From NCBI GenBank assembly GCA_025786725.1, contig JAHLTZ010000022.1:186001-250000 (forward strand): a stretch of 64,000 bases of DNA, read 5' to 3'. The notes below the pieces were generated by a model. That model saw only the letters and a program-made list of their open reading frames with translations. It was not told the DNA's origin and did no database searches. Positions 8,501-33,200 of this stretch are shown piece after piece. The position numbers and the translations under genes were made by a program. Numbering within the stretch: position 1 is the stretch's first letter; the number at the start of each line of letters is the position of its first letter. Source of the stretch: Syncephalis fuscata S228 (lineage: Eukaryota > Fungi > Zoopagomycota).

Positions 8501-9559
8501 TCAGCGGGAATTAATCAATAAGCCTTTAAGAACTGTTGGAAGCATGGGTTTGGTCTGAGCTTCACTGTAGCCAAAACGCATATAAAAACCAGTAACCAAT
8601 TCTGTCACTGTCTTGTCAAATTTTTGCGTCTGTGCCTTATATGCACTATTTCCGAAGAAACCAACAGATCTAACATTTAAAAAGCCACTTGACTTGACAA
8701 ATTTAATCTCGTGTTCACCGATAATAGTCACAGCTAATCATTAAATTAGCATTATTGCTATATGCTATTATATAACTTACTTGAGCTGTCCATATAATAA
8801 TACCATCCCAATTCTTTTAAAAGCTGGAATCCTATAGAATATTTGGTTAGTTTTGCTTAAGAATATGGTTTGGATACCTACCTTTCTTAAGCTTATTAAC
8901 AAAGTTTTGTATATAAGCTTGTGTTAGTTTGGGATCTCGAGATTTAAGAGAAAGGTCTCGATATCTATCAGCAACGATATAAGGATGCTCGTGGACTCCA
9001 TAGTCCGACACTAAATAACAATAAGTGTCTAAACTGAGCTGATACCGCCTAATAGGGCAGTTAATAATACTTTTGGCTTCATAGCCTTCTGGTGTATTGT
9101 ATTTTGCGTTCATGCATTTCTATTCACACAATTAGACAAATTATTTAAAATTTTAGCGATTATTTCTTACTATGTAAAAGCTATAAGGAAGCATATTGTG
9201 TTCTTTAATAGTTGCACAGTGGACTTCAACACGTGCATCTTTTAATGTCCCATAAGCGCCTAGCCCAATGCCAATTGGGCCTTTAAGTACAAGTCCATCT
9301 TCATTAAACGCATTTGGTTGTCCAACTGCATATCTAAAAAATGACTTGCGTCCTAAATCATAGTATAGTTGGTATTACTGTAGCACGACATATGTAACCA
9401 CCTACCACTATCCCATCCATATGAAGTTGGCACTATTTGTTTGTTGTTTACGTTATCAATAGGCCCTACTCTTACTCCAGCAACATCGTGTATTGTTGAA
9501 ACCAGCAACAAAATAGTAGTAACAGCGGAAAAAGTAAGTTGTTTTGTAAGCAGCATCAT
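8501..9559 (-). CDS. Secreted, highly degenerate kinase-derived protein (pseudokinase A), 285 aa; exons 9406-9559, 9171-9352, 8882-9119, 8781-8831, 8501-8733
   Basis: Clean GT-AG splicing into one open frame. Signal peptide MMLLTKQLTFSAVTTILLLVSTIHDVAG. Aligns by eye and by intron position and phase with the genes at 20.5 and 27.2 kb (VEVHC, YCYLV, KKG|FQLLKELGWYYYMDSS|). Confidence 0.75.
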
Positions 9560-10502
9560 GTAAAATGGTCGTTTCTAATCTAAAGTCTATGAAACTTTAA
9601 AAAAGTAAAAGAATGTTGATGATATAACTTGCAATGAAATTTTGTCGGCAAAATGGTGAAGGTGAAAGATAAACAGACTTATTTTCTTGAAAGTAACGTG
9701 TATTTATATCGACAACATCAAATATAATAGTGAGAATAAATAGTTTAACCAGACGAATATGAAATACACAGCTATGCAACTACGCTTGAATTTCAATCAA
9801 TCAAACGGTACTGATTTGAGATTGTAAACTTATGGAAGTTACAATACTGAATGCAGAATTCTGAGTTAGAACGTTTCAGGTTTTTGTTGTATTGGCAAAA
9901 TGGCAGGTAGGAGATATAAAACTGCATAGATATTAATATGGAAAAACAAACTATTAGCTTAAAACACTACTTTCTAATTATAGCATTTCAGAATTAACTA
10001 ATCAATGGCAAATGGAATCTTCAAATAACGATTGTCAAAAATACAATGCACATCTTGAATCAGTATATGCAAAAAGTGCAATGCTTCAATACAACGTTTA
10101 GAATGTAAAATAACTTTGTAGCTGCATTATTATTATATTATCTAGGGAATTATTAGCAAGCTCCTAGTAAACAAATAAAAAGTAATCATCGCATGTAACA
10201 CTATCTGGAGTGAAACTGCTATAAGCTAATACGATCATTGCCAAAGATTTGATCTGCTATAAATATTACGCGCACAACTCAATATTATTTTAAGCGTATT
10301 CTTTATTTGCACTAAACAATTAACTATAATTAGTAGAATAATATAAAACAAAACATAATAAAAGGCTGTTGAGTCCAGGTTTGAATAAGCTGTCTAACAA
10401 TATGATTACAACATTAATTACCATTACCATTAAATAAATATCATTACATTATCATAAATGAAGATATGTAATATATTTATCATTGTAGATAAAACCATTT
10501 AT

Positions 10503-11769
10503 TTATAACTCGTCATGTGCTTCGTCTTCTTTAGCCTCAGCTTCAGCTTCTTCCTTGTTCAACTTAGTTAGCGTTTCCTCAACCTGCTCCCAAGCTTTCT
10601 TTAAATTAGCTTCGCGTAGTACTTTCATTTCATCGGCTTCTTTTTCCATTTCTGCTGCTCTTCCCTTGTCACCATAACCATAGCTTTCCTTGACCTTCTT
10701 TTTCTTTTGCTTTTTAGCCTTCTTATTCTTCTTTTTATTCTCTTGGTCTGCATCTAGTTTTTTGTCATGCTCCATTTCTGCTTTAAAAACAGCATCAAAC
10801 TCTTCAGATATTCTTTTTTCTTTCTCTTTATCCTCTTCGGTTTTCTCGCTGTCGTCACTATTTATAAAATCGTTTATCGCATTGTCCATTGCTTTCTTTG
10901 CTTTCTTATCAACTGGACCACCTGGAAAACCGTTGACTTCCAGTAGCTCAACATCAAATAACAATGCAGCATTGGCTATGGTTCCAGCAAGTCTCCATAA
11001 GTAATTAAATTACTGTGTCGAATATTAGCTACTCACGTGGAATATCTGGCGGACTGCCCATCGCACCGTAGCCTAATTAATGATTACGCATTAAAGCTTG
11101 TATAAACAATAGATCGATCTCCATTACTTACCAAGATCGGCCGGGAAGACTAGTCGACGGTGTTCTCCAATACACATACTAATTAATAGATGGAATGAGT
11201 AAGTGATTATAGGTGATTTTATATTAATTACCCAGGAATGCCTTGATCCCAGCCTAAATAGAATTGAATTGATTGCTAATATATAAATATTCATATAAAA
11301 CCTACCTTGAATAACTTGTCCCATACCTAATGTTATAGTATATAATTGAAATTAGTTATGAATCTAAATAACCATGATTAACAAATATTACTAACCAAGA
11401 GTAAATTCGAATGGAACGCCACGATCAAGTGAAGAATCAAATTTAACATCATCAGCATGTCGTCTGCCCGTGTAATGCATCTTAAGCGTATCTCTATCCA
11501 TTAATTCATCTTCATTAATAATACTTTAGTTTTATTATCTATTTACTTACCCTTTCTTTGCTTTTACCAAGCAATCTTCTTCAGGTATTCTCTTTTTAAC
11601 GCCTATATCATTATTTGTTAGTACTCAATGATACAGCCTATTGTATAAAATGGTGTGCATAATTACCAATACGCAGCTCAGTAGGTGGCGTTTTCTTTTT
11701 CTCCGCCATCACCACAGTTGTAGTGAGGCCTAGGACCGTCAACAAGGTAAAAAGCCGCGTCAATTGCAT
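10503..11769 (-). CDS. FPR2: ER-resident FKBP-type peptidyl-prolyl isomerase (FKBP13/Fpr2-like) with charged C-terminal extension and HDEL
   Basis: Signal peptide [74 protein letters not shown], ends HDEL*. Confidence 0.9.
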
Positions 11770-11918
11770 ATTGCGGTTATTTGAACACTTGTCTGGACAA
11801 GTAAAGTAATAAAATAAAAGATATAGCAATAAGCTGAATAAAGCCAAGAGTAAAAGAAAAGGGTGAATGGATGGTTGGATTTACACATACACACAAATAT
11901 AAAAATAAATGCATGAAT

Positions 11919-11929
11919 GCCACGTCAGC
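11919..11929 (-). promoter_or_regulatory. Putative unfolded-protein-response element (GCTGACGTGGC, containing TGACGTGG)
   Basis: Matches the XBP1/ATF6-type UPRE core about 150 bp upstream of an ER foldase start codon. Confidence 0.35.
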
Positions 11930-13787
11930 ACTATTAACAACAGTAGTTTCCTTTCATAGAATTCTAAAAATTTATGATAACCCCTCTATTAATCTGTTCT
12001 ATGATGTACCGACATGCTGGGTAGATTGACTTTTATTATTTCACATTGTATTTATTAATAAATTAAACTCGCGTCTTTATAAATATTGGCTGGCAGGGGC
12101 CACATCTTACAATCTACATTATCACATTTCTCTTTCTCTTTCTTCACACTTGATAACATATATTCATTACATATACTTGTACACTCTATATATGTTACAT
12201 AGATGGTGTCAGTATTTGATTGACTATAGTCAAGTACAAACACTATTTATACTATGTACTTGTATTGCTCTTTTGTAATCTTGCATATTTTTACAAATCA
12301 CTTTTATTGCTCTGATCATTGACGTTGGCAGCTTTATTGACACGATAAGTGTATTTCTGGCTTGTTTTTATGTTATGTCGAGCATATACTGTAAAATCTC
12401 GTTGTACACTTTATTTATACTATGGATTGCCCTTGCAGATCGCACTGTATGCATTAAAGATCTATTTAATGGCCGTACTAGAAGTGCAATTTACTACTAC
12501 TTCCAAAACGATCTGCAATGGACATCTATAGCATATCAAAGCATACAACGGATTTGGCGGCATCTGGCCACCATATTCGTCATGTACAGCAGCCAGCACA
12601 ATGACTATGTTAACGATATAAGCAAACCAAAGTATATAGCAGCTTTGATAGCATAAAAATCATATGCTAGTTTATATGTTAATAAATGTTGATCCATATT
12701 ATTGTTGCTGTAAAGTATTCATGTTATAATTTGATATGTAATGTCACTCACCATTCAACTCTATGTTTAATATAACAGATATTATTAAATAAAGTCATTT
12801 TAACCACAAATTATACTAAATGGTGCATTGCATTAATATATACATGCAACAACAACTATAGACAGCGTATAGCCAATATATAATAAAATGATAAACATTA
12901 TAGTGAATATACAATATTGCGCATATATGCATGAGCAGATAACCGACATTAGTCGACATTTATAATAATAACGCTAGAACAAAAATACAAAACAGTTTTG
13001 GGTATAGAAAGACCAGACAAGTATATAATGATATATAAACAATGTTAAAATTATAGTACAATGAGGGAAATGAGGGGAATGAGTACAGTGTATTGGAACA
13101 TATAAACAATAAAGTGTGTCTAGTATATCATATAGCGATATATACAAGCCATAAATCGAGTGGCATTGTACATAAAAAGACTATGAATAAATTGAAATAC
13201 AGATAAGGAAATTGTTCAAGTAATAAAATAAAATAAACAATAAAGATTAATTGCATAAAAGCAAATATAGTTATAGAACAATGTTTTCAATAAAATAAAA
13301 AAAATGGATATTAATGCATAAACAAATGTTATTATTATAGAACATGATATTATAATTGACAGCTAATCTTTAATCATTAGATTCAGTATATAAGCAACAG
13401 TGTTTATTGAATGTTATATAAAATACTTGTAAACATACCTATTCTAAACTACGCCTTTGTGTGTATAATTAAATAGCGATCCATCAATAAAGAAAGAAAA
13501 AGAGTTAATAAGAAAGGTTAGTATAAATGGCTATACCCGGCATATCGCCTGAGTAAAAGAAATGTTTAAAATAGCAGCTACTAGTACAACTTTCTGTTAT
13601 ATTTAATTGTATTCTATGAAAGCGATAATGAGCAATAATATTACGTTAATGCTTATTGTGAATGATGATTTAAATACAAATCAATCTAATCAAATTATTA
13701 CAATCGATTACGTAAAAAGATTTAATATCCTGGGGGGAGTCAAAGTAAACTTCAACACATTTTATTTATGCTAATGGTAATACATAA

Positions 13788-15020
13788 TTACTCAAGTGAT
13801 AATTCAACTGCAAATGCTACGGCTATTTTGGTAAAACGAAGTGCATGGTCGAAATTTACCTTATCAATAGTATCTTCAGTAGTATGAAGAATACGGTTAT
13901 CGCTTACTTTGGCCGATTCAAAAGAAATAGCTGTCGGGTAGCCAAGCCTATTCCACGAATAATGGTCTGAACAGCCATAGCCACACCGGTCATCTTTAGT
14001 GGTGACATCTGGCAAATATTGTTTAATTATTTCTTTGATTGTAATCGTAAGATTTGGATCAGCGTTATCGGTAATAATACCTATTTCGTTCGGACGGCCT
14101 TTGACAGGCACGCCAGTCATGTCTAGTTGCAGCATACCCGCCACCTTACGCTTGGCCTGCTGATAACTGTGCGCAACATCTTGTGATCCCAAAAGACCAT
14201 CTTCTTCTCCAGCATACCAGTGAAATTCAATTGGGCGCTTTGGCTTGAATCCAGAATTAATTAAAGCACGGAATGCTTCAATACTGGATACAGTACCGGA
14301 TCCATCATCGTCAGCACCTGGAGCTCGACCTGCACGATCCTTACTATTGGTAGAATCCAGATGAGCACCAATAATAACCGCTTCTTCTTGGTTTTTCTGA
14401 CCTTCAATTCGAGCAATGATTGAAGATTGAATAAAAGCATGCTTAAATCCAGTTACTTTGACTTCAACTCCAGGTTTGGCAGTTTTAGCTACTTCTTGTA
14501 CTTTGGAAAGCAGCCATTTGGATGCATTGGCTCCATGTTCGCTATCGTAACGACGATTAAAGAAAGTTACCAATTTTTCTAACGTTGCCTTCATTAATAC
14601 GGTATTACAACTAGCGATAATAGGAGCCACTTGATTTTTATGAGACAAAACAACAGGCGAGTTTCTAACGAATCTTTGGACGTCTTTAGCGAAAGAATTT
14701 AGCTTCTGAACGCGATGAGGTGTATCTACGTTTTCAATCATATCTGGATGAAAAGTAACATCCATGAATTTACGGTCGGCTTTTTTAATATTCCAAACTT
14801 GCGATTCGGACATCCACGTAGGTGACTGGTCTACTCCTTGCTGAATCAAATGAAAGCTCTCGCCTTTCTCGTTCGTTGGAAAGCCATTGGCGTTTGTTTG
14901 AGTATGCTTGAATGGAAGAGAAGGGAAGCGATTGGCTGATGTTGGCTCGGCTGGTGCGGCATGTACATAAGCTGCAGCCGCTAAAGCCAATAAAATAAAA
15001 GTGTTGATCTGTGGCTGCAT
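13788..15020 (-). CDS. Secreted leucine aminopeptidase (M28 family, LAP1-like), intronless
   Basis: Signal peptide plus propeptide. Zn ligand motifs GAHLDS, APGADDDGSG, AGEEDGLLGS, QLDMTG, CGYGCSDH, HTTED. Confidence 0.95.
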   Translation of the reverse strand: MQPQINTFILLALAAAAYVHAAPAEPTSANRFPSLPFKHTQTNANGFPTNEKGESFHLIQQGVDQSPTWMSESQVWNIKKADRKFMDVTFHPDMIENVDTPHRVQKLNSFAKDVQRFVRNSPVVLSHKNQVAPIIASCNTVLMKATLEKLVTFFNRRYDSEHGANASKWLLSKVQEVAKTAKPGVEVKVTGFKHAFIQSSIIARIEGQKNQEEAVIIGAHLDSTNSKDRAGRAPGADDDGSGTVSSIEAFRALINSGFKPKRPIEFHWYAGEEDGLLGSQDVAHSYQQAKRKVAGMLQLDMTGVPVKGRPNEIGIITDNADPNLTITIKEIIKQYLPDVTTKDDRCGYGCSDHYSWNRLGYPTAISFESAKVSDNRILHTTEDTIDKVNFDHALRFTKIAVAFAVELSLE

Positions 15021-15816
15021 GTTGATTTGCTTGAAGTGATACTTTGTCTCGTTAAGCTTAGATATGCAGAGTGGTTAAAGCAGTTGGTAGTTGCGTAAAA
15101 TACGTTAACAAGTTTTGAAATGTGGTGTGTTGTAATTGATCGTGTCGGAGGAAAGCAAAGCAGGTGATGAATATTGTGCTATTGAAATACAAACATCTAT
15201 ACGAGTATTTATACTTGGTAGAGATAAATTAAGTGCTGCTATTTCTAAAAAACAAGTAATTATTTGGTTGAAGTTGAACAAAAGATTCCCAGAATCGATG
15301 ATGTGTTGCACCAAAATTTTTCTTTATCGCAGCCTTGTTCTTGGCGTGACTTCATTGTATGACCAGATTCTTTGGAGATTGTTGGTGGCAATTCCGATGT
15401 TTCAAGATGTATGAGAAAGTGTCTATACACATAAAGATCATTGTCTGTCATAATTGTATGGCTGAATTATAGATTTACTTGAGGCCTATTGCAAATAAAT
15501 AATGGGACTTTTATGTTTACTAGAAAATTACCATACGCTTTCAAATATTTCTTCTATTGCCGAATTATTTAATGAATAACAGCTTTACATACAAATAACA
15601 TAAATGCAACAGCATAAATAATTTTAAGCCTTACGGCTATACTTTATTGGTATTTAATAGGTCTAATCTATGGTTATCCGAGTACAACAATAAACACCAG
15701 TAAATAATATAAAAAGCAGGTTATTGCACCTCCTATCATTAACCGAAACACCTCGTGTAAAATTGTTGTTGCTGAAAGAGTCGGATATACGTAAAACTAA
15801 TTGTATACTAACCTCC

Positions 15817-15870
15817 TTAATAGACAACGTGGGTTTAATAGAAAACGTGGATTTGGCAGATAACGTGGAT
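15817..15870. repeat. 3 x 18-bp imperfect tandem repeat (TTAATAGAMAACGTGGRT-like)
   Basis: ttaatagacaacgtgggt / ttaatagaaaacgtggat / ttggcagataacgtggat. Confidence 0.75.
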
Positions 15871-16635
15871 TTGTTTGTAATGGAGGTACCTTAATATCCA
15901 CTGAATGCTCGCCTCATTTCTTTATGTTGTCGAATAAGTAAAATGATAGCAACATCCCTAAATACACAGTCTAAAGCTTTATTATTTGCGCCGAGCTTGC
16001 AATCAATTGAAATAAACATATTATTAAGCTTTCCAACTAATTGTGATGCAACCAATAGTTCACAAGAGATGTTGAAATTGACTAATCAATAACTGCACAC
16101 TAACCACATTAGTGTAACACGACGCATAACATTTATAATAGTATATACTACGTATTAATATACTAGCTTCAAGTTTTGAATAGCAAATAATCATGCTATT
16201 TATTGATAACAATTTTATTTCTAGTATTTAAAAAGACTATGGCTCATTTTGTTTATTTATGTCTAAATAGACCAAGCTAAATGTGCAAAAATACATCTAC
16301 AAGTAAACAAATAAGTTTATTAATAAAGCTTGACTAATAAAGAATAAAACTACATAGAGCAAAATAAACCACATAAACAATAATGAGAAAACTATATTGC
16401 ATACGCTTGAGTAAGTGAAATGAATCAACGTCTATGGAAAATATAATATACTTAATATACCATAAAATGATATGTGGTATTAGGAGTATACAAGGGGAAG
16501 AGGATATATGCATACAAAATAATAAATCAACAATAATTTTAAGAGTAATAGCTGTTTACTTTCATCTTTGTTTCAAACCAGTTGAACTGACATCTTATTT
16601 TTCTTGATCCTCGTACATTAACGCTCAATAGTAAA

Positions 16636-17386
16636 ATGGCCAGCAATATTGTGTCGCGTACAGCACAGAAACTGCAAAGCAAAGAGTTTCGCGACTATCT
16701 TTGCAGGTAAGAGCGATATTCATATAATAGTCATAACGGTCGAATTCCTACTAACAGCTACATCTATCAATTGATCTATTTATTCTTCTTTATAAACATA
16801 TACGCATTCATCGATCAGTACGGTGAGTTATATTATTTCTATAGTATACTGTTTAATAATATGTCTATTGGCATGTCTAGCACTTTTGGGGTCCAGGCAA
16901 GTAGTAGAATAATAACAACACGTCGGTATTACTAATACTTACATTTAAACCATCATACAGTTGCTAACTGGGGCTTACCTTTGGCAGCCATGTCGGATAT
17001 GAAGAAAGATCCAGAGATTATTAGTGGATCCATGACAACAGGTAATGCTGGCCTGTAACACTTGATCAATTGCATTTCTAATTTTATTATTCAATGATGT
17101 GCAGCACTATCGCTGTACTCATTGCTATTTATGCGATTTGCATGGGTGGTTATTCCGCGTAATCATCTGCTGCTGGCCTGTCATGCCACGAATGAAGTGT
17201 GTCAATTAACGCAAGGTTATCGATTTATTAAGTACAACTAGTAAGTTTTCTAAAGACATGTTTACAAGTATCTATTGAATGCAGCGGATTTACCAATACA
17301 ACATTACACTTTTCTTCGATTATAGTTTTGGTGGAAAAGAGGAGAGGATGAAAGCTGCCGCATCCAACTTGTCAAAGGACAATTAA
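16636..17386 (+). CDS. MPC1: Mitochondrial pyruvate carrier 1; 6 exons including a 4-nt micro-exon and a GC-AG intron
   Basis: Spliced: [69 protein letters not shown]. Absent from the ORF track. Confidence 0.95.
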
Positions 17387-17457
17387 AACTTGAAATAAAA
17401 GGAACGAGCAAAGGAATGAAGCGGTTTAGCGTTTGTCTTGATTCCATATGAGCATTA

Positions 17458-20054
17458 TTACGCTTTTTCTTCGCCAACTCGTTGAGTGTAATCAAGACGG
17501 GCTTGAGTATAAAAACACATATATCTGAACCATTTTTATAGTTATTATTATTAGTATTATCAAAGTAGTAACAATAAAGCGTGTTATGGGCATCAGGTGG
17601 CTATAGTTATTAAACTAAACTACTTACGCTTTACTGGCCAGTACTTGGACACGATCCGTTAGCGTAATCATTGTGTCATCAAAGTAAAACCACTAGAAAT
17701 AGTTGGTATGCCTAGTACATCAGTAGCTGTTTACACAACCTACCTGATCTCGACAACGGGCATATGCTGTATAATGTCCATTGTCTAATTTGCCTTGGTG
17801 ACACACAACGGCGTAGAGCCGATATTGACAGGCAGGAGATGATCTACAGTAGATTGAATAGGAAATAAGCATAAAGAGTTATTTATGCTAATAACGTACG
17901 TTGGAGTGGATTTGTGAGCATTTGCACCCCGAGCCCGTGAAGTAAACTGTGTCATATCCAACGTTTCAGGAAATCGAATATGTGATTCAATCTTGCTAGC
18001 ATTTTGGCTATGTTCAAATCGCTAATGATTTGCTAATTAGCAATGCAGCAATAATAACAATATATATATATCTCTATATATATCTAAACACACCTTAAAT
18101 TGAAAGCTTAATACGGGTGGTAGTCGACGAATAGACATTTGCTTTGTAGCTGACTGTAAATAAATAATTGTAAATATACGTCAATTACTACATTTAATTC
18201 CTTTGTTCAATGATTACCTGGGAGTTATTACCGCATTTGCTGCAGGTATATTCGGTGGCATCCAATTTCTCTGCTTGCGTAAATCTATTATCGATTAGGC
18301 GTTCAATTTGTTTGACAGCTATTTTAGACTATTATTAGCGATTAATTACCGTTCTAAACAGCCTAATAGCGAATTGGCATGATCATCCGACGATTTGTCA
18401 GCGCCATTTGTATGGTGTGAACTGGCCAGTGACGATGATTTCAATGGACGACCATGAGGACGGTGAGCAGATGTGTTCAAATCAAGCGATATATCCAACA
18501 TTGGATCAATGACAGTTGTCACATTATCACAAGCCAGACAAGTGACATCAGATTGTAGTTCACCGGCAAATGTGGCATGAACAACACATCGACATGCATC
18601 CATACTACTGCCTAGTAGCATCGATGTAATTGTAGCAATATGCGTTAATGAACCGACTGATGTATCAGGCATACCCACCTTCTAGACTAATGTGTAGCTG
18701 ATTAAGTGCTGATATGAAAAATTCATGAGCATCCTGTTGTGCATAGCCGGCCAATTCTGACGAGGAACGCCATATAACCTGCAAAAAATTGCCTGGATTA
18801 AATGGTTCTTTACGTCCTGAGTGGAACTAGTTGATATGCAATTATAACAAGTTTAAGTCGCCAGTTGGTATAATAATGCTTATAAATCTACCTCAGAAAA
18901 TAGCCGATCTAGTTCGCAGGATAAACAGTTTTCTCTTCGGCATTCGTGGCGTGGGTGTCGGTCACTTAGGAAATAAGTGCGTAAAAGTGGATTATGGATA
19001 AATGCCTGAAGAATGACGCTCATAAAACACGTATTACCCATATTACGTAGACCACGTAGGCCTAAGTAGTTTGTTAATTAAATCAATAAACTAAACTATA
19101 CACTACTGCGCTTTTAAGCAATTACCGCCGCATGCCTGAATACGTGTGCGTGCTCGTATTAATCCGGCCTCCTCTTCGCTGGGACGCCAATCAACGTAAC
19201 GTGCTCGCTTTAGGCCTGGTTCTATTTCCAAGTTGTCAGTTAGTTGCATGGCGTATAAGGCAAATAAGAGCAACAGCTAATAGGTGTGGTATTTAACGTG
19301 GTAGCTTACCATAGATCTGTGTCAGCATATCATGGATTCGGCGTGATTCTACCGCATAGGCTTTGTCAAGCTCATGGCTATAAATAAAATCGTTACAAAG
19401 TCGACAGTGTACAAGACATCGTTCGAAATCGACCGCTATCCGCATATATGGATCAGTTCTACCGGTGATGCTAATATTATTTCTAATGCTTATCAATCGG
19501 TCCTACCAAAAATATGATCGCGTTGTACAAGATGCGCTTGGATATGACCGCCACGCCAACAACCAATATAAACGCAGTGGATGCATGCGTACAATCGACC
19601 TAGTGGATTAAGACAGTTTAAACAAAAAGCCCGCGGCAATTTCTATATACACATAAAACATACAATTAGTTTCGACCGGCAAGCAAGTATAGTCACCGCC
19701 TCTTGTTATCAACCGGCCGCTTACTGACCTTGCCACGTTTACGTTTACCGATCTCAGGAGCAACAGGCGCGCCTAGCTCTAGAGAAAACTCTATGCGATG
19801 TCGATAAAGTAGAGCATAGCGGACAATCATACGAAAAGAGTCAAGTAGATCGCGTTTGCGAGAGCGCATGTGTTCGCAGCCTTCGCTGGGCGCTGAAGAT
19901 GCAGAACCGCCGCCAGCTGCGAAGAAGCGGCCGTTGAAGCGTTGCTACTATGACCGCCTGTCGCGGTCGACATGGCCATTGACATTGACGTGTGCGCATT
20001 CGTAGAATCGCCCGAACGGGATGACCGTTGCAAATTACCACTTTTTTCAGACAT
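17458..20054 (-). CDS. UBP8: Ubiquitin-specific protease Ubp8/USP22 (zf-UBP plus USP domain); one frameshift near 19921
   Basis: GCEH N-terminal zinc motif, [68 protein letters not shown]. Confidence 0.92.
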
Positions 20055-20539
20055 TGTGTCAGTAGAAGATGAAAGCCTTGCTTGTTAATGAACCTAATAA
20101 AAGAATGTAGCTGTCCAGTAAGAGAGCGGATATTTTTGAACAGTAAGGGATCGAGCTATTAATTGTTATGGTCAGATATGGTCATTGGATAAGGTTTGAT
20201 TCAATGTGAATTGCACACTCGACTCGATACTATTTTGGTGCTTTGCTATTGAAGATGTAGACCATAAGTCAGAATTTTAAATGTCCAAATTCTTACATAA
20301 TGCCCCATATCTTTGTTAATATGCAATGAAATAATTTGGTTGTGTTTATAGTACAATAAGGTAGAATATTAATGGAACAATATAACACCAAGTTAACATG
20401 AGATATGGCTGATTATGGAGACTATAAATAGGTATCAAGTTATGATAACACAGTGGTTTATTAAATTGTAACAAACAACGATGATTTATTGAATAAAACC
20501 TTATTAGATTATAACCCAATGTAAAATTGCAATAAACTA

Positions 20540-21837
20540 TTATACTCGCTTAGCGTTGGGTGGCATAACGGGTACTTGATTGAATATGGCTAGAGTGGCT
20601 CTGTATTTTTCAATAAGATTTTCCGTCAAAGTTCGTTCATTTACGTTAGGATTGAGCATGAGATTCATGACGGCAATTAGCGGCTTCAATGTTGTTCGAG
20701 CATTGGCAATCATATTCTTATCGTTCTTCATGGCAAGGTGCGGTGATTTGAAAAAGCTGTCAGGGAGCTCTGCTTTAGGATTGTAATTGGCGCTAGCATC
20801 TTGTCCAGATAGCATCTTGTATAGTACGGCGCCAGTGGCCCAAGTAAGCTTTTTAGAAATAATATCTTTTGTATCTTCTTTTTTAAGAAGGCCAGGTGCC
20901 GCCACATTTGCTGCATTTCCCAACGGTTGAAGAATGTTCATTGATGCCTCTAACTTTCCGTACTTGTCAGAATTTAAGCAAATATCTAAAGTACCAGTTA
21001 GTTTGATTAGATAAAGCGACGGTCGATAATAATAGACTACTTACAGTCTGGACCAAAGTTTGTATACAAAAGACCTGCTTTATTCATAAAAGTTATACCT
21101 ATACACGAAATAAAGTTAGTATTAAATGATAGTGATACTAATGATAATAATGGCTTAATTTAAAGTGTCACTTACCTTGGACAATTTGGCCAAATATTGG
21201 ACTTATTTTGGTAAACTTTTCTTCGATCGATAATCCCATGGTATAGTCGATAAGCTTTTTGGCACAAGCGTTTTTTGTAACGTAACATTGATGGGATTTG
21301 TTGGGAGTTTCGGTAGTAAAAAGTAGCCCGTTGATGAATTTCAAACCATTAATATTGATGGGTCTGACGGTGAGTGCTGGATCTCCTGGCTTGCCGTTTT
21401 GAACATCGTGATAATTGGATACAATCTAAATTTACAAGATTAGATGGTGCGACGAGCAATATTATAGATTTACCTTTAATGCCTTGTAGCGGGGTGGCAA
21501 TGGCTTTATCCCGGTAGGTACACATCGAATCTCTCCTTTAACACCATCGTATACTGCTTCTGCGCCATGTATGCCATAGTCATCGACAGGTAAGCGTCCA
21601 ACGATCTGTAGCTTTGGATTACTAAAAACACCAAGCTTGTTTAATGGGGTTGAGACAAATGGATCTATAAATAATACAACAATTATTAATTAGTTTATAT
21701 TGATGTGGTATCAGTCAGCTATGCTTACCACTATTGTTGGGAATAGCGTCGGCTGTGGCCACTTGCAAGTTAGCACCTAGGCCTGCAAGACATATAGCGG
21801 CAGCAATAGGAAAAAACGTAAGATTTTTGATCGACAT
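20540..21837 (-). CDS. Secreted pseudokinase B, 349 aa; exons 21729-21837, 21474-21664, 21176-21425, 21045-21098, 20540-20985
   Basis: Signal peptide MSIKNLTFFPIAAAICLAGLGA. Kinase subdomains VIa (QIVQGITFMNKAGLL), IX (TWATGAVLYKMLSG) and XI (LMLNPNVNER). The HRD position reads YTN and there is no DFG. Confidence 0.85.
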
Positions 21838-23370
21838 GATAATCTATTCTGATCTAAATGGAGAGTTGTAGTGATGAGTGCGAATGCTGAAGGAATAATG
21901 CCGTAAAATTGGCGAATATTTATACAGAACTTTCTAATGCTTTTACATCACGCGTATCAGCTGTTATTTGATGCATGCCAAATTAAAACATCCAACTGGT
22001 TGTTTGATAATAAAACTCCAAACGAATAAAAATAAACCGGAATTCACAGATAAGCAAGTTTTATTGTGCGTGTTTATTGCTGTATACCATAATGGCCACG
22101 TGATGTAAAATGGAAATGTTAATTCAATGATAAGCAACCGGTCTTCTAGTTATCTTACAGGCTTTGCCATAATGATTAGTGTTGTGTTTATTGAAATTTG
22201 CTGTTAAATAAACCAAGTTATGTCGCATCAACGTGGTTTTACTAAATAAATATCAAAATTATGCATGGCAACAATACAATGTTTTGGATCGATTTAATTA
22301 GTAAGATTGGCGTGTCATACATGCTGCATTCAATTCTCAAAACCTGTAAGACTTGGCTCGTTTTTCTCTCACATTCAATATATTGCCTATTAAGAAATAA
22401 TGTAATTAAATTTTTATTAATGTATATGGAATAAAATGCAATTTTTTACACATTGATAGATATGTTAAATGTAGAAAATACAACTTTTAAGTAGAATTAC
22501 AACAGTCGAGGCCGCAAAGTATATACTTGTTTACTCGCAGATTGGTGAGGACATGTTTGAAGTTTATACAGTCGTAAGTCTCAGATCCAGTTTTTCACGG
22601 GGATTGTTTGCATTAAGATTTTGATAATTTTGTATGTACACGTATAATAAATTGTCACGATTATAACGAAATGATTACTATTATGCTTTGATATAGCTAT
22701 TGTGAAGATTTGGCCCAATGTAAATATTGTCTGCTTGACTTATATTATTTCATTATATTTCATACTTGCACTGAAAACACAGTTGTAAGCTAAATATATA
22801 TTATATCATTACGTTAAATCATAAATGTAGTAAAAGCCACTAAATTTAAATATAAAGAAACACACATTTGTACAATTGACATAATGTTTTACATCATCTA
22901 TTGACATTGCTAAACTTTTCTGTCATATATATTATTTTTACATGTCAATAAATAATGCGACAATAATGATATCCAAGTAGAAACAATACATCGCGCCACA
23001 AACACTTCAAACACGACAATTGTATTGTGTATGTGTGACAATCATCATTACAATCGTTTATTCATAACAAATGGTATTATTTTACAATAAAATAGCTGCC
23101 TATCAGCTATGATTTGATTTGACTTTTTTATTTAATAGACTATAATCAACTGTTCCTATTGTATCATACATAAATAGAAATAAAATAGCACTTTGAATAA
23201 CGGAACCATTGAATAGATTAAATATGGCAGTGACGTGCAATATTAATGTATAAAACAGGAGAAAACAAAGGTGGCTATTGTCGCAGCTATTAATAGCACT
23301 TGTTTTGTTTTCCTACTTAGTTGCTAGCTTTCTAATCGCTTGTTCTACGCATTGCATTTTGGTGGCCACA

Positions 23371-24639
23371 ATGCCCGACTTCAATACAACAGTTCAGGGG
23401 TTTTTTGCACTATTCGCCGTCTTGGCGGGTTCAGGTGTTTTTCTGGCCTACTATTTCCAATGTAGTATAATATATTTGTCGAGATTCCCGGAAGGCTCGC
23501 GTCAAGTGGTGAGTAATCGTACTAGTTGGCAGGTCTGCTATGGTTATTAATTGGTGCTGCTACCCATTATAACAGGTCGACAAACCATCCGACTACGATA
23601 TGCCATACGAAGATGTTTGGCTTCGTTCACCAGATGGCGTTCGGTTGCATGCTTATTTAATTACACGGGCTACACCTAGTGAAACGGCCAATGCGCCAAC
23701 AGTGTTCTATTGCCAGGTAGGTGAATCAGACCTCCGCTACTATATATTTTGAGCCTCATAAAACAATTATAGGCAAATGCTGGCAACATGGGCCACCGAC
23801 TACCTATTGCAAAAGAACTATATCATCGCTGTAACTGTAATATATTTATGCTATCTTATCGCGGGTAAGTTAGAAATAGCTATCTAGTTTGTAATTGCAC
23901 TATATACAATATTATGCCACTAGATACGGTCTGAGCGAAGGTGATGCCAATGAGAAAGGCATTAGACTGGATATGCAAGTAAGTAGCTATGCCGGCTATT
24001 ATTGGCAAATAATAGACAAATGATTAATGTTTTGCTATCAGACAGCCTTGACATTTATTCGTGATCACGATGTGATCAAAGATACACGTATTGTTTTGTA
24101 TGGACAATCTATTGGAGGTGCAATAGCGATTGATCTTGCTGCCCGTAATGAAGAAAAAGTATGTTGTGTGAAACTGCGCTGTGTATGTCATTATTGACAT
24201 ATTGTTTATATTAGATTCATGCTTTGATGTTAGAAAATACTTTTCTCAGTGTGGTAAGAGAGTCGATATCGTTGTATTTACCAACACTAATCAATTATCA
24301 CTGTTTATACCAAATAGCCCAAACTAATCCCCCACGTTATGCCTTTTCTTTCCTCGGTGGCGTTCATGTGTCATCAGCACTGGGCATCGGAGGAAATGAT
24401 TAGACAACTAAGGCGTATTCCTATTTTGTTCCTGGCTTCTGGTCAAGATGAATTAGTACCACCTCTTCATATGCGTACACTTATGATCTTGCCAATACTA
24501 CGGGCGGGTCTACATGGCGAGAATTCCTCACGGAACTCATAACGATGCGTGTGTGCAGCCGGGCTATTTTGAAGCTGTTGAAGGCTTCTGGCGTGAACAC
24601 GTTGTTGGCCAGCCACACAATAATTTTAGTAAAAGTTAA
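23371..24639 (+). CDS. BEM46: BEM46/ABHD13 alpha/beta hydrolase; two 1-nt frameshifts near 24481 and 24526
   Basis: N-terminal TM, ANAGNMGHRLP, SYRGYGLSEG, YGQSIGGA, LENTFLS, DELVPPLHM, HGTHND after correction. Confidence 0.92.
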
Positions 24640-25565
24640 ATACTTGCATTGCTATAAATACATTGCACAATGTCTCAGACTTTTTTTATTAAACTGGTTA
24701 TCTTATTGGGCTACAGCCTCCTATGGACTTGTCTAATTAATAAACGTGTTTTCTTGCGCAACCATGCTGAAATATAGGGCTATCCGCACTATAGTAGGAA
24801 TAGAAACTGGTCTTTATTCTGCGACAAGCAGCCAATGAGTATTTGTCACTGTTTTCAATTGATGAATTATAAAACCGGAATGAACACAGTCCACCAGTAT
24901 CGCGTAAATGAAACAAGTCCATGGCTATTTCACGTTGTTATGTTTAAAGATGGCCATAGTTGATTGTTCTCCTTCATAAACAACCATGTATGTGCCGGTA
25001 TCTTTTGTATATTCGTTGTCCAAAAACAACGTCCATATAATGTTAATCAATGGCCCATTGTTCTTTCTTGAATGATGGGGGGGGGGAGGAGGAGGAAATC
25101 AGCATTGGAGAACGCCCTGCTTTCATCAATCGTTATTATCTGTTTCAGACTGCCTTGTCACTATTTTCTGGTAATGGACCATATGGTCAATCATTGGAAA
25201 CAATGTTACATCCGTATAGCAGCGTGTTTTCTACCTGGTCAAATAATTTTCATAGTGCTCACAAAATTTGAATAATACTTTTAAACACTGCTCGGGTCAT
25301 CTACGCAACACGACTTTGTTTTTACAGTATTCCAAATAGTATTTTATTCGTTGCATTTTCTCATTTATTCGTTTATTCATTTATTTTTGTCTCTCGAAGG
25401 TATACGTCAGTAGCGACCGCCTAATTTTTCTTTTATTTAGAAAATAGTACGTAGCTATATTATCACTACGGTTAGTGGTGCAGTGTGACGTTACGTTCAG
25501 CCCCTCCTCTATAATCAAAACTACCCTATCTTTTTTATCGTCTCCTCCTCCATCCTCTCAATGAA

Positions 25566-26862
25566 ATGGCGCCTTTGCATACAAGTAACGTCGAGGGAAT
25601 GATGGTGAATGCTGGCATTATCATCGGAATCATCACTTTTTCAGGACTAGGTGTGTTGCACTACCTGAGATTTAGTGAAAAATTGGCCAAGGGACATGCT
25701 GGTTTATTAATGGCTTCTATACGTAAGTTATAATAATGAAATTATATAAAAAGTCGGTTACCAACATTTTGTTATAAATACATAAATACAGTTCAATGTC
25801 TTCAATGGTTGGTACTTATCATTGGTGGTATGTCCCCGCACTACTGTAATGCCATCAATTTCGGCATTATGGCTGCTATACCTGCGTATTATTCATTCAA
25901 GTGGTAAGTTACACGACTTGCCAGTCTATTAGGATGACTAATAAAAGCAATAGGTTTAAAAAAATGAAACAACACCAAAGCAATTTTAGAATTCGGGTTG
26001 TTTGTATCTTCGTCTACATTTGGATAACGCTGTTTGCACTATCTTCATGTGCTCAAGTTGCTTCCATTGCAATAGATGAATTCAGCTTAGGATCCCACAT
26101 ATTCAAAGCTATTATGTTTATGTGCAATGCAGTTATTGGCACTGGTGTCATTTTGATTTTCTTGCTCAACATTTGGTTTCTTACACTGATTCCACGTGAA
26201 ATGAAAAGAATTAGAAGAACTAAACGTATGGTAAGTCAATAGATGTAATAATAATAATACAATGATCATTTATTAACATATATTTACAATCTTAGCAAAT
26301 TTATCGTCTTATGTGCTTTTCAATATTGACTTTACTGAGTATTATGTCAGTTCTATATATTCAATACTTTATACATCCACTTTTTATGATATTTTATCAT
26401 TTTATCGCATTGATACCCCATAGTTCACTTGATGAATTTGAAGAGGCACAGATCATTTATGCTTCAAAACAATACAACAAAGCACTAGCATATCCATTTG
26501 CCAAGCACGGTATCGTTCCTCCATCTACTTATTTACCAAGGCTTGGTCGTGTATCTACCTTGCGAGTACCCGCATTCAAGGCAAATAGACATATAGAGAG
26601 TCTATCAAGTGACACGGTAGTCGACTACGACGATGCCGATGACACTCAGAGCGAATTAAGTAGCGTCGAAACGGTTGATGATCGCGAAGTGCTAAAAGGG
26701 CGCGGTGGTGCGACACTTAACGCAATCGACCTAGCCTATAACGCGTTGGTTTCAAATAGTAGCAGTTTTTGTGATAACGATTGTCCCGTTAGTGACTGTG
26801 GAGATGTGAGAGCAATGGATATGGCAGTGAGCGACCTGTCTCAGTCGAATCCATTGAAGTAA
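25566..26862 (+). CDS. Orphan seven-transmembrane (GPCR-like) protein, 4 exons
   Basis: Spliced product shows 7 hydrophobic segments, a Cys before TM3, a basic loop REMKRIRRTKRM between TM5 and TM6, and a Ser/Asp-rich tail. Confidence 0.65.
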
Positions 26863-27164
26863 GTGTTATTCGGCCGAACATCGCTTACAATGTTGATAAC
26901 TTGAATGCCGCCGCCGCCAACCCGCTAAAGAGTAGGTGTTAGTCAGTGTTATGGCAATCATGCTGGCTAAATCAGTGCTGATTTACAATTATTAATAACC
27001 AATTTACGATTTTTTTATAAACGACATATTAACGACTAAATATGCCTTTGTAGCGCTTTATACAACATATCATTTACAATAAAGTGCATCTTTGACATTT
27101 TACATAAATATTCAAAATAGTAGTTTATTTAAATGAAATCAGTTATTTAAAATACTTTAATCTC

Positions 27165-28399
27165 TTAGAGTTTTTGTTGCATCGAATACATTCTGGGAAG
27201 TGTACGTTCTTCATATTTAGGCATCATAAACGCTTTCATAATCCCAATTATGTCTTTCCATGCTGAAAGCTCTTCGGGATTATTAGTTACAGGCGTAATA
27301 CTCTTTTCTCCACTACGAATAAGAAGCATGCGTAAACTCAAGGCAGTTGGTGTATGATGGAGTGCTTCTATAGCTTTATCAAATGGAGTCTTTCCAGATA
27401 GCAGATAATAGATGCACACACCGATGGCCCAGGCATCTTGAGAAAATGGCTCGCTTATTTGCTTGGTGAAGTTTTCCGGAGCGTAAAACTTAATGTTTCC
27501 ATGTAGAGGGAAAGATGGCGAGTTGACATTTTGAATTTTATTTACCGATTGTGCCGAAGAGAAATCTCCAAGTACAAGCCATGGTTTGGCGCGGTCGTGC
27601 GAATCACTAATGAAAATATCTAGTTTACATTAGCATTTTCATTTATATTAAGTAATCAAACGTACTATTGGCATTGATATTTCGAAGTGTAACACCACAA
27701 TAATGAATATATCCTACAGCTAGTGTAGAAGTGAATATACTGTTAGTTAACGTATATTATTCGACATACCATCAAAATCTTGTAGAACAGTTTAGGTAGG
27801 AATTGTCCCTTTTCTTTCACGGTCAACGAAGAGGCATATTGGAAAAGAGTCTTTTCACCAAAATAAGATTTGATAAAGCAAACAGCATCTTTATATCGGA
27901 ATATTCCATGAAATTCTACAAAGTAAAATAAGCCACTGTTTTTGGGTGTAATTGACTCGTCAATCTTGGACATAAGTTTCTGCACCATCTAGTGTTAACC
28001 GTTTTAATGCTTTAATAAATGTCTGTACTTACACTGTGCATCAAACTTTCACTTGCAATAATTGAATCTATTGTAGTGCACATGACAGTCTTATCGGCTC
28101 CTTTGTAACTTCCAGTTAAAACAATCAAGCCTTCCTTTTCGCCGATCGGTTCTTTTATTTCTAACTCGTGATAGTATTCATGCGCATTCATAGCAATGGT
28201 CTGAAACATTTTCGACTTAATCTCTCCATCTAATAATGCAATGGTATATGGTTAGATTAAATACAACACGTAGATTGGTTATACCTTTTATCGGCTCAAC
28301 TCCATAAGGTAGTATCTTTGCTTGAGTAGCTGTTGCCATAGCCATTGCCAGAAGGCAGCTAACAGCAGCGATTCGATAAACTTTATGATATGCGGTCAT
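27165..28399 (-). CDS. Secreted pseudokinase C, about 346 aa; exons 28285-28399, 28033-28229, 27770-27988, 27666-27719, 27165-27619 (needs +1 nt near 27770)
   Basis: Signal peptide MTAYHKVYRIAAVSCLLAMAMATATQA. GYIHYCGVTLRNINANNIFI (HRD reads LRN), LGDFSSA, FYAPE, DAWAIGVCIYYLLSGKTPF, MMPKYEER. Confidence 0.88.
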
Positions 28400-29228
28400 T
28401 TGTTCTTGTATAATTTCTAAAGTAGAGATGCGTCTAAAATTGGAATATCGTTGTCAATTGGTATCACAGGGTGGGTGGTAAGCGCGACAAGGTGTTCCAT
28501 TTAACACTCTGCTCGTACTTTTATATCCGATTTACTGCCATTTTAATAGCCAATTTTGCATTAACAAATGTGAACAGCCATGTTGGCAAAAAAGCAATGC
28601 AACGTGCTGTTTCCAGTGATGGGTCGATACAAAGATGGTCTGAGTATCAAATCATTTATTTAGGAAAAGACATTGAACATTGGAAAAGGAAATACCAATT
28701 AGCGGCAATTCAAAAAGTGTTTTTATTATTTGCAGCTCCAATTCGGAGAAATGATTATATTTACTAAAATGTAGATGGCTGGTCATTTGACGTACCCAAA
28801 ATGGAACGCATCATAATGGCTGTATGAGGGAAAGTTAAATTGGAAAATCAAGGCTGAACTGTAGCTCTAAAAGGATAGCCAGTCCAAGCTTACTTCTTTG
28901 TGTTGAGATTGCGTGCTTTGACAAACAGCAAGCATGTGTTGTATAGAATAAGAACAGCACTAATCGTGGCTATATATTCGTCGTCACGCTTATCTTGCAG
29001 CAATATCGGGTAAGCAGCAACACATATTTCAATTAACGATATGAAAAGTTTTTTACAAAATAAAACCAGTCCATATCCTTTGTTATCAAATTTGAAATTA
29101 CATGAACTGTTGGTGGTTAATTCAGATAAATTTGCACAATACAACAAAATGATAGCAATAAAAGTGTAGAGAATTAATATCAAACTTTATATCAAACAAA
29201 AGGTCTAAAGAATGAAATGCCAGCCTGT

Positions 29229-31850: not shown

Positions 31851-33200
31851 ATGACGGTTCAATCGCCGATATGCATTCTACAGCCAAGAATGCCGCTGCC
31901 AAAACAATCCATCCAGCTTAATGATCTTGATCTATTTCAGCCGCCAGTCTATATTAAACCACTTTTCATTTATCGTAATTTCGATCCATCGGCCGTGTTT
32001 ATGCCCACTTATACGCTGGTGGACGGTTTACGCCGGGCACTTGACCAGTTTCCAATCCTCTATGGCCGTTTTGAGAAAACACCCGATCAGCGGGTGCAGA
32101 TTCAATCGTCCCTTGAGGGTATACCCGTATACGAGGCATTTCTTAATATGCCGCTAAGCCGATTGGAGCCTTATTGGCGCCACGCAGATATGCCTCTTGC
32201 ACTAGATCCGGGCCACTTTGTTGCCGAGCGTGGAGATCCGTTGCTTATTGTGCAAATTACTCGATTTGCCAATAATACCGGTGTAGCTATCACGATTGTA
32301 CAACATCATTTGTGTGTAGATATTTTCAGTATTGTACAGTTTGCACGTATTTGGGCCGAGAATGTACGTCGCGGCCCCTTAGCTATTAATAACACCGCCA
32401 CGAACCTTTCGGTAACGCATAATCGACAATTACTTCAGGGCAAGCCAACGCGTATACCTATCACACCACTTAAACCAACGCGACTTTTACCGAAGCAAGA
32501 TAGATCGATGCTTATTCTTCAAGTGTCGAGAAAGAATCTTGCCCAGCTTAAGATCGATGCACATGCAACACTACCAACGCATGGTAACTATGCAATACCG
32601 TGGGTGTCGAGTCTAGATGCACTAAGTGCGCTGATAGCACGAGCCCATTTGCGCCTACAAAAGAATAAACACGACAATCCACTAGTCAATAGTCAACCAC
32701 GTACTATTTCAATGCCAATTGATTTACGCTATCGCACACCAAAACAAGTACCCGCCAATTATTTCGGTAATGGTACATTGCCGGCATTGACTAGCGTCAC
32801 TGCTGAGGAAGTGCTTAATCGGCCTATTGGCTATTTAGCCGCTAAATTACGCACTACTATCAATCGATATACGGAAGAAACATTGCCATCAATGCTTAGC
32901 GAGTTGGCCAACGAGCCGTTTGGATGGCCCACATCAAAATCGGCTCTTTATCGATTCAGTACCGCGGATATTTGTCTAACCGATTGGTCAAAATCACCGC
33001 TTTATGATGTTAATTTTGGTCATGGACCACCTGTCCGTTTCCGTGTAGCCGGCAATCCAAAAGGGCCGCCCGGATGCTATTTACGCATGCCACCAACGGC
33101 CATTAATGGTTTGGAGTTTTACATTGCCGTTCAAGTAGATCAAATTGAACAGTTCAAATCTGATACTGAATTGGGAAAATATGTAGATATTATTGGATAA
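31851..33200 (+). CDS. BAHD-type (PF02458 transferase) CoA-dependent acyltransferase, intronless
   Basis: HxxxD motif (HLCVD), LDQFPILYGR, PLLIVQITRF, PANYFGN, TDWSKSPLYDVNFGHG (DFGWG-like). Confidence 0.9.
   Translation: MTVQSPICILQPRMPLPKQSIQLNDLDLFQPPVYIKPLFIYRNFDPSAVFMPTYTLVDGLRRALDQFPILYGRFEKTPDQRVQIQSSLEGIPVYEAFLNMPLSRLEPYWRHADMPLALDPGHFVAERGDPLLIVQITRFANNTGVAITIVQHHLCVDIFSIVQFARIWAENVRRGPLAINNTATNLSVTHNRQLLQGKPTRIPITPLKPTRLLPKQDRSMLILQVSRKNLAQLKIDAHATLPTHGNYAIPWVSSLDALSALIARAHLRLQKNKHDNPLVNSQPRTISMPIDLRYRTPKQVPANYFGNGTLPALTSVTAEEVLNRPIGYLAAKLRTTINRYTEETLPSMLSELANEPFGWPTSKSALYRFSTADICLTDWSKSPLYDVNFGHGPPVRFRVAGNPKGPPGCYLRMPPTAINGLEFYIAVQVDQIEQFKSDTELGKYVDIIG

Follow-up and report, generated by a model that had tools for sequence, protein, structure and literature searches.

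The question raised by this locus is whether three minus-strand genes, here called A, B and C, in a 64,000-nucleotide stretch of the genome of Syncephalis fuscata S228 (contig JAHLTZ010000022.1, positions 186,001 to 250,000, hereafter the window) encode members of one kinase-fold family and, if so, whether their products leave the cell and act on a host. S. fuscata, to which exact matches of the window's proteins among public records also belong, is a haustorial mycoparasite of the Zoopagales, whose assembly comprises 29.4 Mb with about 37% G+C and short GT..AG introns; the preliminary assignment to Zoopagomycota was thus correct. A preliminary description of the window had proposed a family of three secreted, catalytically dead kinases with a common four-intron architecture serving as effectors. 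The present analysis favours, by somewhat better than even chances, a modified account in which A, B and C are distantly related exported pseudokinases of a large, Syncephalis-specific kinase-fold family with a candidate role in host manipulation. The best-founded part of this account is that they are pseudokinases belonging to a kinase-fold family, in which we have high confidence.

All three genes consist of five exons on the minus strand at the coordinates first assigned to them (Table 1), and the spliced models of A (285 amino acids, aa) and B (349 aa) have the lengths proposed before and are identical to the public proteins P0096 and P0095. Their introns measure 46-80 nucleotides (nt), all open with GTA and follow the phases 1/0/1/1, with exon 4 of 51/54/54 nt, as originally described. 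The intron positions are also shared as claimed, with two corrections in detail, since intron 2 lies inside helix C rather than after it, and intron 4 interrupts the codon of the catalytic-loop Asn position rather than following the catalytic loop. In the public annotation A and B are 'hypothetical proteins' with no precomputed Pfam domain and C is a 'kinase-like domain-containing protein', whose public model starts 18 aa later and has its splicing routed around a frame break. This frame break could be examined with spliced RNA contigs of run X1 (2017), the only public run containing this DNA, which were aligned with 22421-28420 and confirmed all four introns of C (28284-28230, 28032-27980, 27769-27720 and 27665-27620). 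Because the RNA places the acceptor of intron 2 of C 9 nt downstream of the obvious site, this protein has 343 aa and not the approximately 346 aa estimated earlier; the candidate acceptor at 27989/27988 was accordingly replaced by the RNA-supported 27980/27979. The correction of +1 nt that the preliminary description had to assume at the third intron of C was found as an extra letter of the RNA contig within 27771-27776. At the joint 27720/27776 six letters lie between the two sides in the RNA contig versus five in the genome, and the extra letter restores phase 1 and leaves the frame open. A weak alternative donor, which would have kept C in frame uncorrected, was ruled out, as the RNA has the canonical donor and one extra letter. 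RNA contigs of this run contain many single-letter insertions or deletions relative to the assembly, nine of them in a 1.3-kb transcript at 24423-25722, with further one-letter differences at 26807 and 26923, and hence an assembly error or a strain difference is the likely cause in C as well. Gene C is not a broken gene, and genes of this assembly can appear frame-shifted without being so; in the local protein models the frame break of C is written as X. For A, an acceptor of intron 1 at 9326/9325 was dropped for 9353/9352, which matches the public model and a motif common with P0015. The RNA contig over C extends about 700 nt upstream of the proposed ATG (28400 to ~29100, minus strand), a stretch that could represent a long leader with small upstream open reading frames or read-through from the upstream neighbour.

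The kinase fold attributed earlier to all three proteins is supported firmly for C, by sequence, and for B, by profile and predicted structure, and, in the case of A, for the amino-terminal lobe (N-lobe) only. The public protein of C matches the Pfam family Pkinase (PF00069) with an expectation value (E) of 1.6e-16 and 60.9 bits at a cut-off of 31.7, and its last exon retrieves B-Raf, PLK1, CDC7 and TNNI3K as best matches in a sequence search of the PDB. B reaches E 8.5e-4 and 19.2 bits with Pkinase, which is under the cut-off, and Pfam searches with single exons gave a weak Pkinase match for exon 5 of B and otherwise nothing. The case for B is carried by profile and structure comparisons: in hhalign, a pair formed by B and P0119, a 51% paralogue, matches ten ordinary kinases from helix E to helix I (probability 94.6, E 6e-8), and its AlphaFold2 model has a predicted local distance difference test score (pLDDT) of 77.8 and a predicted template-modelling score (pTM) of 0.76. 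With this model at least 500 PDB kinases, and among the matches listed nothing but kinases, were retrieved by Foldseek at E<=1e-3 (best E 3e-9), and a search of the ESM-atlas returned Pkinase clusters only, with template-modelling scores of 0.57-0.63 over 240-270 residues.

Several results concerning A count against a kinase fold for this protein. Full-length Pfam searches with A and its paralogue gave no match, hhalign of A versus ordinary kinases gave no significant match, and its AlphaFold2 model, which at full length is poor (pLDDT 53.9), retrieved nothing in Foldseek at E<=0.001. The AlphaFold2 alignments had ordinary kinases added, which may bias the models toward a kinase fold, and a genome search with an N-lobe profile built without A and B retrieved neither of them. 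Pairwise tests found B and C similar (z = 10.9) and A-B and A-C at noise level, A, B and C detected none of one another in exon-level searches of the genome, and word-based homologue searches with A and B yielded one paralogue apiece. Nevertheless, the N-lobe strands of A are predicted at pLDDT near 90, with the carboxy-terminal lobe (C-lobe) predicted poorly, and an exhaustive structural comparison returned almost exclusively kinase and APH-type N-lobes (Z up to 5.8, residues ~46-153). As the N-lobe profile lacking A and B failed to retrieve A, independent support for A comes down to hhalign. There, A with its paralogue matched seven family members at E 1.2e-4, five A-like sequences (three of them automatic gene models chosen with the hidden Markov model, HMM, of the family) matched 13 typical members at E 2.7e-15, and these 13 matched ordinary kinases at E 4.6e-38. 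This chain of matches from A-like sequences through typical members to ordinary kinases places A in the same kinase-fold family, of which, on the evidence of these alignments, it is a strongly diverged, C-lobe-shortened derivative.

The loss of catalytic residues, which had been claimed for all three proteins, holds for the beta3 Lys and the catalytic Asp. A carries H, M, V and G at the positions of the beta3 Lys, the HRD Asp, the catalytic-loop Asn and the DFG Asp, and B carries R, N and Y at the first three and has no DFG. In C, M replaces the beta3 Lys and N the HRD Asp, but the loss is less complete, as this protein retains APE, the Asn of the catalytic loop and the Asp of DFG, which reads DFS. 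The landmarks read from the window, namely xxxxC at the VAIK position, C-[YF]-hydrophobic and the HRD equivalents YYM (A), YTN (B) and LRN (C), all appear as stated in the alignments. On these substitutions A, B and C are pseudokinases, being members of the fold and not active enzymes as judged from their residues, and C, with these three motifs in place, may have kept an ability to bind nucleotide or metal. Contrary to the idea of a uniformly dead family, about a third of the sampled members (P0078, P0025, L035, L049, L050, L045) possess the full catalytic set of Lys, HxD, Asn and DFG Asp, and the remaining sampled members are degenerate in differing ways.

The family is far larger than the three genes first recognized. 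The count of paralogues by profile that the preliminary description had called for gave 40 places in the genome at E<=0.01 with an N-lobe exon profile, and 101 places, some 50 of them at E<=1e-5, with a broader profile built from those matches. Some redundant contigs contribute to these counts, as may ordinary kinases among the weakest matches, and the family occupies about 50-100 places in the S. fuscata genome. One contig (G000:C125:8992-15703) repeats 20540-27270 of the window with 100% protein identity for B and the end of C, and ends at about 15.7 kb. Several other family loci are likewise present in two or three identical copies on small contigs; redundant or haplotype contigs thus form part of the assembly, and copy counts are inflated. 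Automatic modelling covered 30 family loci, 25 of which yielded a five-exon model. In 23 of the 25, the frame that follows intron 2 is open for no more than 195-291 nt, which makes introns 3 and 4 necessary, and exon 4 measures 51 or 54 nt. Public models agree on the introns for five of the six mapped family genes besides C (P0015, P0095, P0096, P0118 and P0119), the last two of which have one intron more apiece. A pair of loci corresponding to P0078 (L033 and L032; G000:C246:190493-193648 and 217846-220995), in which the catalytic set is intact, has introns 1 and 2 only, exons 3-5 forming a single open frame of ~780 nt; the automatic five-exon models of this pair are wrong. Introns 3 and 4 were either lost in the P0078 pair or gained elsewhere. 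The four-intron architecture, proposed as a shared feature, is therefore general in the family without being universal, one clade being devoid of introns 3 and 4. A k-mer search upstream of 24 family loci revealed no convincing common promoter motif.

A structural feature that sets the family apart is a pair of Cys residues in the N-lobe. The first directly follows the beta3 Lys position and the second belongs to the C-[YF]-hydrophobic motif in beta5, three residues before the gatekeeper. Both are invariant in 36/36 aligned sequences, including A, B and C, and at both positions the ten ordinary kinases in the alignment have residues other than Cys. In kinases of standard topology beta3 and beta5 run antiparallel next to each other, with the two positions on the same side, which makes a disulfide plausible; judged from this geometry, the Cys pair could plausibly form an N-lobe disulfide in the oxidising secretory route.

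The N-termini of A, B and C have the organization of signal peptides, with a short charged stretch, a hydrophobic core of 9-14 residues and small residues at -3/-1. All export signals were judged by a hydropathy heuristic (Kyte-Doolittle, 9-residue window), in which the N-terminal peak of the three proteins is 2.5-2.7 versus -0.3 to 1.8 in ten ordinary kinases. A hydrophobic N-terminus is present in 25/25 modelled family loci and 0/10 control kinases. In line with the preliminary description, scanning of A, B and C found no later segment above the transmembrane threshold and no H/KDEL retention signal. A hydrophobic C-terminal tail was not found either. From these features we infer that secretory routing of A, B and C is likely. 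Some points weigh against it: in the public model, C starts from an internal Met and so is devoid of a signal peptide, and the N-terminus could be a signal anchor, secretion being a heuristic prediction only. An uncleaved signal anchor, or a start codon misplaced in annotation, would leave A, B and C as unreleased proteins, that is, membrane-tethered or intracellular pseudokinases of ordinary signalling, an explanation which can invoke the internal start of the public C model without a hydrophobic stretch, the RNA contig that continues ~700 nt beyond the ATG and so does not fix the start, and the purely heuristic nature of the signal-peptide calls. We consider it quite unlikely, since the extended N-terminus of C can be aligned with the signal peptide of P0011, a relative from Syncephalis pseudoplumigaleata, both being followed by an LP-x-G motif, and since the hydrophobic N-terminus recurs not only in all the modelled loci but also in the public models of A, B, P0011, P0015, P0017, P0025 and P0078. 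The hydrophobic regions are moreover short (~9-14 residues) and followed by the small residues at -3/-1, and an oxidising compartment would more readily account for a pair of invariant Cys.

A maximum-likelihood tree built from 27 members assigns A, B and C to three separate, fully supported clades with very long branches, the median terminal branch being ~1 change per site. What had been called a family of three thus represents three deep clades within a family that has dozens of loci, and by this tree A, B and C did not arise from one another by recent tandem duplication. On the well-supported branches the 'intact catalytic set' state must have changed three times or more. The ratio of nonsynonymous to synonymous substitution (dN/dS) versus the nearest paralogue is 0.62 for A, with a value of ~1.0 in exon 2, the N-lobe exon, and 0.41 for B, within a range of 0.4-0.6 among paralogues; with dozens of loci and such terminal branches, the description of the family as expanded and fast-diverging has held. 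The last exon of A (8504-8731) is 87% identical to that of its paralogue with a synonymous divergence (dS) of 0.085 (G000:C164:9692-9919, C339:547025-547252), and the other exons are 38-69% identical with dS of 0.34-0.74, which looks like a recent gene conversion confined to the 3' exon.

These rates bear on the possibility that A, and perhaps B, no longer have a function and are decaying remnants of a kinase expansion that was once active. Such decay would account for the lack of a Pfam hit, the loss of every catalytic motif, the shortened C-lobe and the dN/dS of ~1.0 in exon 2 of A. RNA support likewise concerns only gene C of the three, with contigs aligned to 22421-28420, and it comes from a single run of an organism that is normally host-grown, so that growth stages are inseparable, a circumstance that also counts against assigning any of these genes to the host interaction. 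However, the frames of A and B stay open over five exons with all splice sites kept, the overall dN/dS values are 0.62 and 0.41, and at least five A-like paralogues retain four Cys and several motifs. C groups with P0011 of S. pseudoplumigaleata and P0014 of Syncephalis plumigaleata with support 100/100, and these proteins are degenerate too; the dead state of this clade has thus been kept across three species, which argues against simple decay. Among the explanations considered, decay appears the least probable, and retention of A, B and C as exported pseudokinases is preferred.

As regards taxonomic range, the last exon of C, searched against 1.8 billion representative proteins, gave 94 matches at E<=0.001, and the named matches with both a signal peptide and the Cys pair came exclusively from S. 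fuscata, S. plumigaleata and S. pseudoplumigaleata; an unnamed metagenome fragment with a closely similar kinase core was also among the matches. By the searches run this is suggestive of a family specific to Syncephalis, with the reservation, which weighs against that specificity, that it reflects one exon-based search cut at E 0.001 and not a survey of fungal proteomes. The strongest matches to the C-lobe of C outside Syncephalis were P0002, P0003 and P0004, from a diatom, an oomycete and a chrysophyte, which are giant proteins with 3-5 kinase-like stretches each.

The same taxonomic pattern helps in judging whether the targets lie in the fungus itself. A secretory-pathway or cell-wall kinase system acting on the fungus's own exported proteins, in the manner of Fam20C/Fam20A, would have A, B and C as allosteric regulators and no host target. 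Signal peptides, the mixture of active and dead members and the Cys pair fit such a system equally well, and the presence of housekeeping genes nearby (Sec10, an F-box protein), with no obvious accessory island, is in its favour. The Fam20 proteins resemble the Syncephalis family in being signal-peptide kinases, disulfide-stabilised, with a pseudokinase paralogue that regulates the active enzyme, and by this analogy Fam20C/Fam20A offer a possible model for A, B and C acting together with active paralogues. On the other hand, Fam20 is an atypical kinase family with few conserved genes, whereas typical Syncephalis members match the canonical Pkinase PF00069; Pfam searches with A, B, C and nine relatives yielded no Fam20C-type family down to E 0.1-10, nor was there any Pfam match to the four-jointed families. 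Housekeeping secretory kinases are usually few and conserved, in contrast to a family that counts dozens of loci and has terminal branches of ~1 change per site, and all named matches come from one parasitic genus. A system confined to the fungus's own proteins is on these grounds improbable. A host-directed effector role for A, B and C is put forward as a tentative proposal, to which we give rather less than an even chance.

The mechanism that we propose for A, B and C as exported pseudokinases of a Syncephalis-specific family is the following. The signal peptide would direct co-translational entry into the endoplasmic reticulum, oxidative folding would follow, and the proteins would then be exported from the hypha or the haustorium, where they would act by binding and not by phosphotransfer. 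They might serve as scaffolds or allosteric partners of catalytically intact secreted paralogues, as ROP5 does with ROP18 and Fam20A with Fam20C, or as decoys that engage host proteins where the parasite meets the host fungus. In its most far-reaching and speculative form, which we regard as rather unlikely, this would amount to a secreted 'kinome' of Syncephalis, in which disulfide-locked active kinases and pseudokinase partners exported from haustoria rewire signalling or defence of the host fungus. If true, it would be the first kinase-fold effector family in fungi and the first for fungus-fungus parasitism, independent of the apicomplexan, oomycete and bacterial cases.

The ROPK family of Toxoplasma gondii comprises active kinases, such as ROP18 and ROP17, and the pseudokinase ROP5, and resembles the Syncephalis family as a lineage-specific, expanded and fast-evolving set of signal-peptide kinase folds in a parasite with a mixture of active and dead members. 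It differs in that specific kinship in sequence or structure was not found, that the best PDB and Foldseek matches of the Syncephalis family are generic (B-Raf, PLK1, CDPK, CAMK1D), with no ROP kinase in the top 50 of Foldseek for B, and that the Syncephalis family is fungal with a fungal host, has its own Cys pair and intron pattern, and belongs to an organism to which apical-organelle delivery is inapplicable. The FIKK kinases of Plasmodium are also exported parasite kinases expanded in one lineage, but they are mostly active and carry a PEXEL export signal, whereas A, B and C have a plain predicted signal peptide, and the FIKK motif was absent when looked for in the three proteins. The oomycete Crinkler CRN8 is likewise a secreted kinase-domain protein of a filamentous, haustorium-forming parasite, yet it is an active RD kinase in contrast to the dead A, B and C, in which neither LxLFLAK nor another Crinkler N-terminal module is present. 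The bacterial effectors OspG, NleH and SteC recall A as a kinase N-lobe with a much reduced C-lobe, and in a feature search with a protein language model the clusters closest to A were those of SteC and OspG (score 0.92, 150/256 features), which is a weak lead only. A has no match to the Pfam family OspG_kinase, and these bacterial effectors are active and injected by type III secretion, unlike A, which derives from a eukaryotic Syncephalis family.

To our knowledge, effectors of fungi that parasitise fungi are almost unknown, and we know kinase-fold effectors as textbook examples from apicomplexans, oomycetes and bacteria and not from fungi. A search of the open-access full-text literature found no description of secreted kinases of Zoopagales or of a fungal secreted pseudokinase effector family. 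Kinases are unmentioned in a secretome study of 132 zygomycete genomes (PMC9391592) and in a further secretome survey (PMC13188720). As A and B are without an annotated domain and C is annotated without a signal peptide, secretome surveys based on gene models would miss the family. The significance of the locus is that the genome of an early-diverging mycoparasite contains dozens of loci for kinase folds with predicted signal peptides, a cysteine signature of their own, and both intact and dead active sites. If the proteins are exported to the host, this would represent an independent invention of a secreted kinase/pseudokinase arsenal and would provide a concrete entry point into fungus-fungus parasitism.

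Table 1. Genes A, B and C and their features, in positions of the window.
Feature	Position	Strand	Description
Gene A	8501-9559	minus	Public model P0096, BDF19DRAFT_414811; 285 aa; predicted short-form secreted pseudokinase, C-lobe truncated
Gene A exons	9559-9406, 9352-9171, 9119-8882, 8831-8781, 8733-8501	minus	Model identical to P0096
Predicted signal-peptide-like N-terminus of A	9476-9559	minus	~28 aa
First family-invariant Cys codon in A	9216-9218	minus	Directly after the beta3 Lys position; equivalent to Cys84 in B and Cys89 in C
Exon 4 of A	8781-8831	minus	51 nt; end of helix E and degenerate catalytic loop, YYM for HRD
Gene B	20540-21837	minus	Public model P0095, BDF19DRAFT_445966; 349 aa; predicted secreted pseudokinase, full kinase fold
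Gene B exons	21837-21729, 21664-21474, 21425-21176, 21098-21045, 20985-20540	minus	Model identical to P0095
Predicted signal-peptide-like N-terminus of B	21751-21837	minus	~29 aa
Exon 4 of B	21045-21098	minus	54 nt; end of helix E and degenerate catalytic loop, YTN for HRD
Gene C	27165-28399	minus	Public model P0001, KAI9594107.1; 343 aa; predicted secreted pseudokinase
Gene C exons	28399-28285, 28229-28033, 27979-27770, 27719-27666, 27619-27165	minus	RNA-supported
Predicted signal-peptide-like N-terminus of C	28319-28399	minus	~27 aa; outside the public model
Exon 4 of C	27666-27719	minus	54 nt; end of helix E and catalytic loop, LRN for HRD; Asn-171 equivalent in split codon
One-letter gap in the assembly relative to the RNA contig, end of exon 3 of C	27771-27776	minus	Assembly one letter shorter

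Two further genes of the window encode proteins with a signal-peptide-like N-terminus, an M28 peptidase (13791-15020, minus strand, Pfam E 3e-38) and an S8 subtilase with a PA domain (44539-46089, minus strand, E 5e-43), so that, together with A, B and C, at least five predicted exported proteins are encoded in the window. About 3.5 kb from C lies an intron-less gene for a BAHD-type acyltransferase of 449 aa (31851-33197, plus strand), which matches the Pfam family Transferase at E 9e-43.

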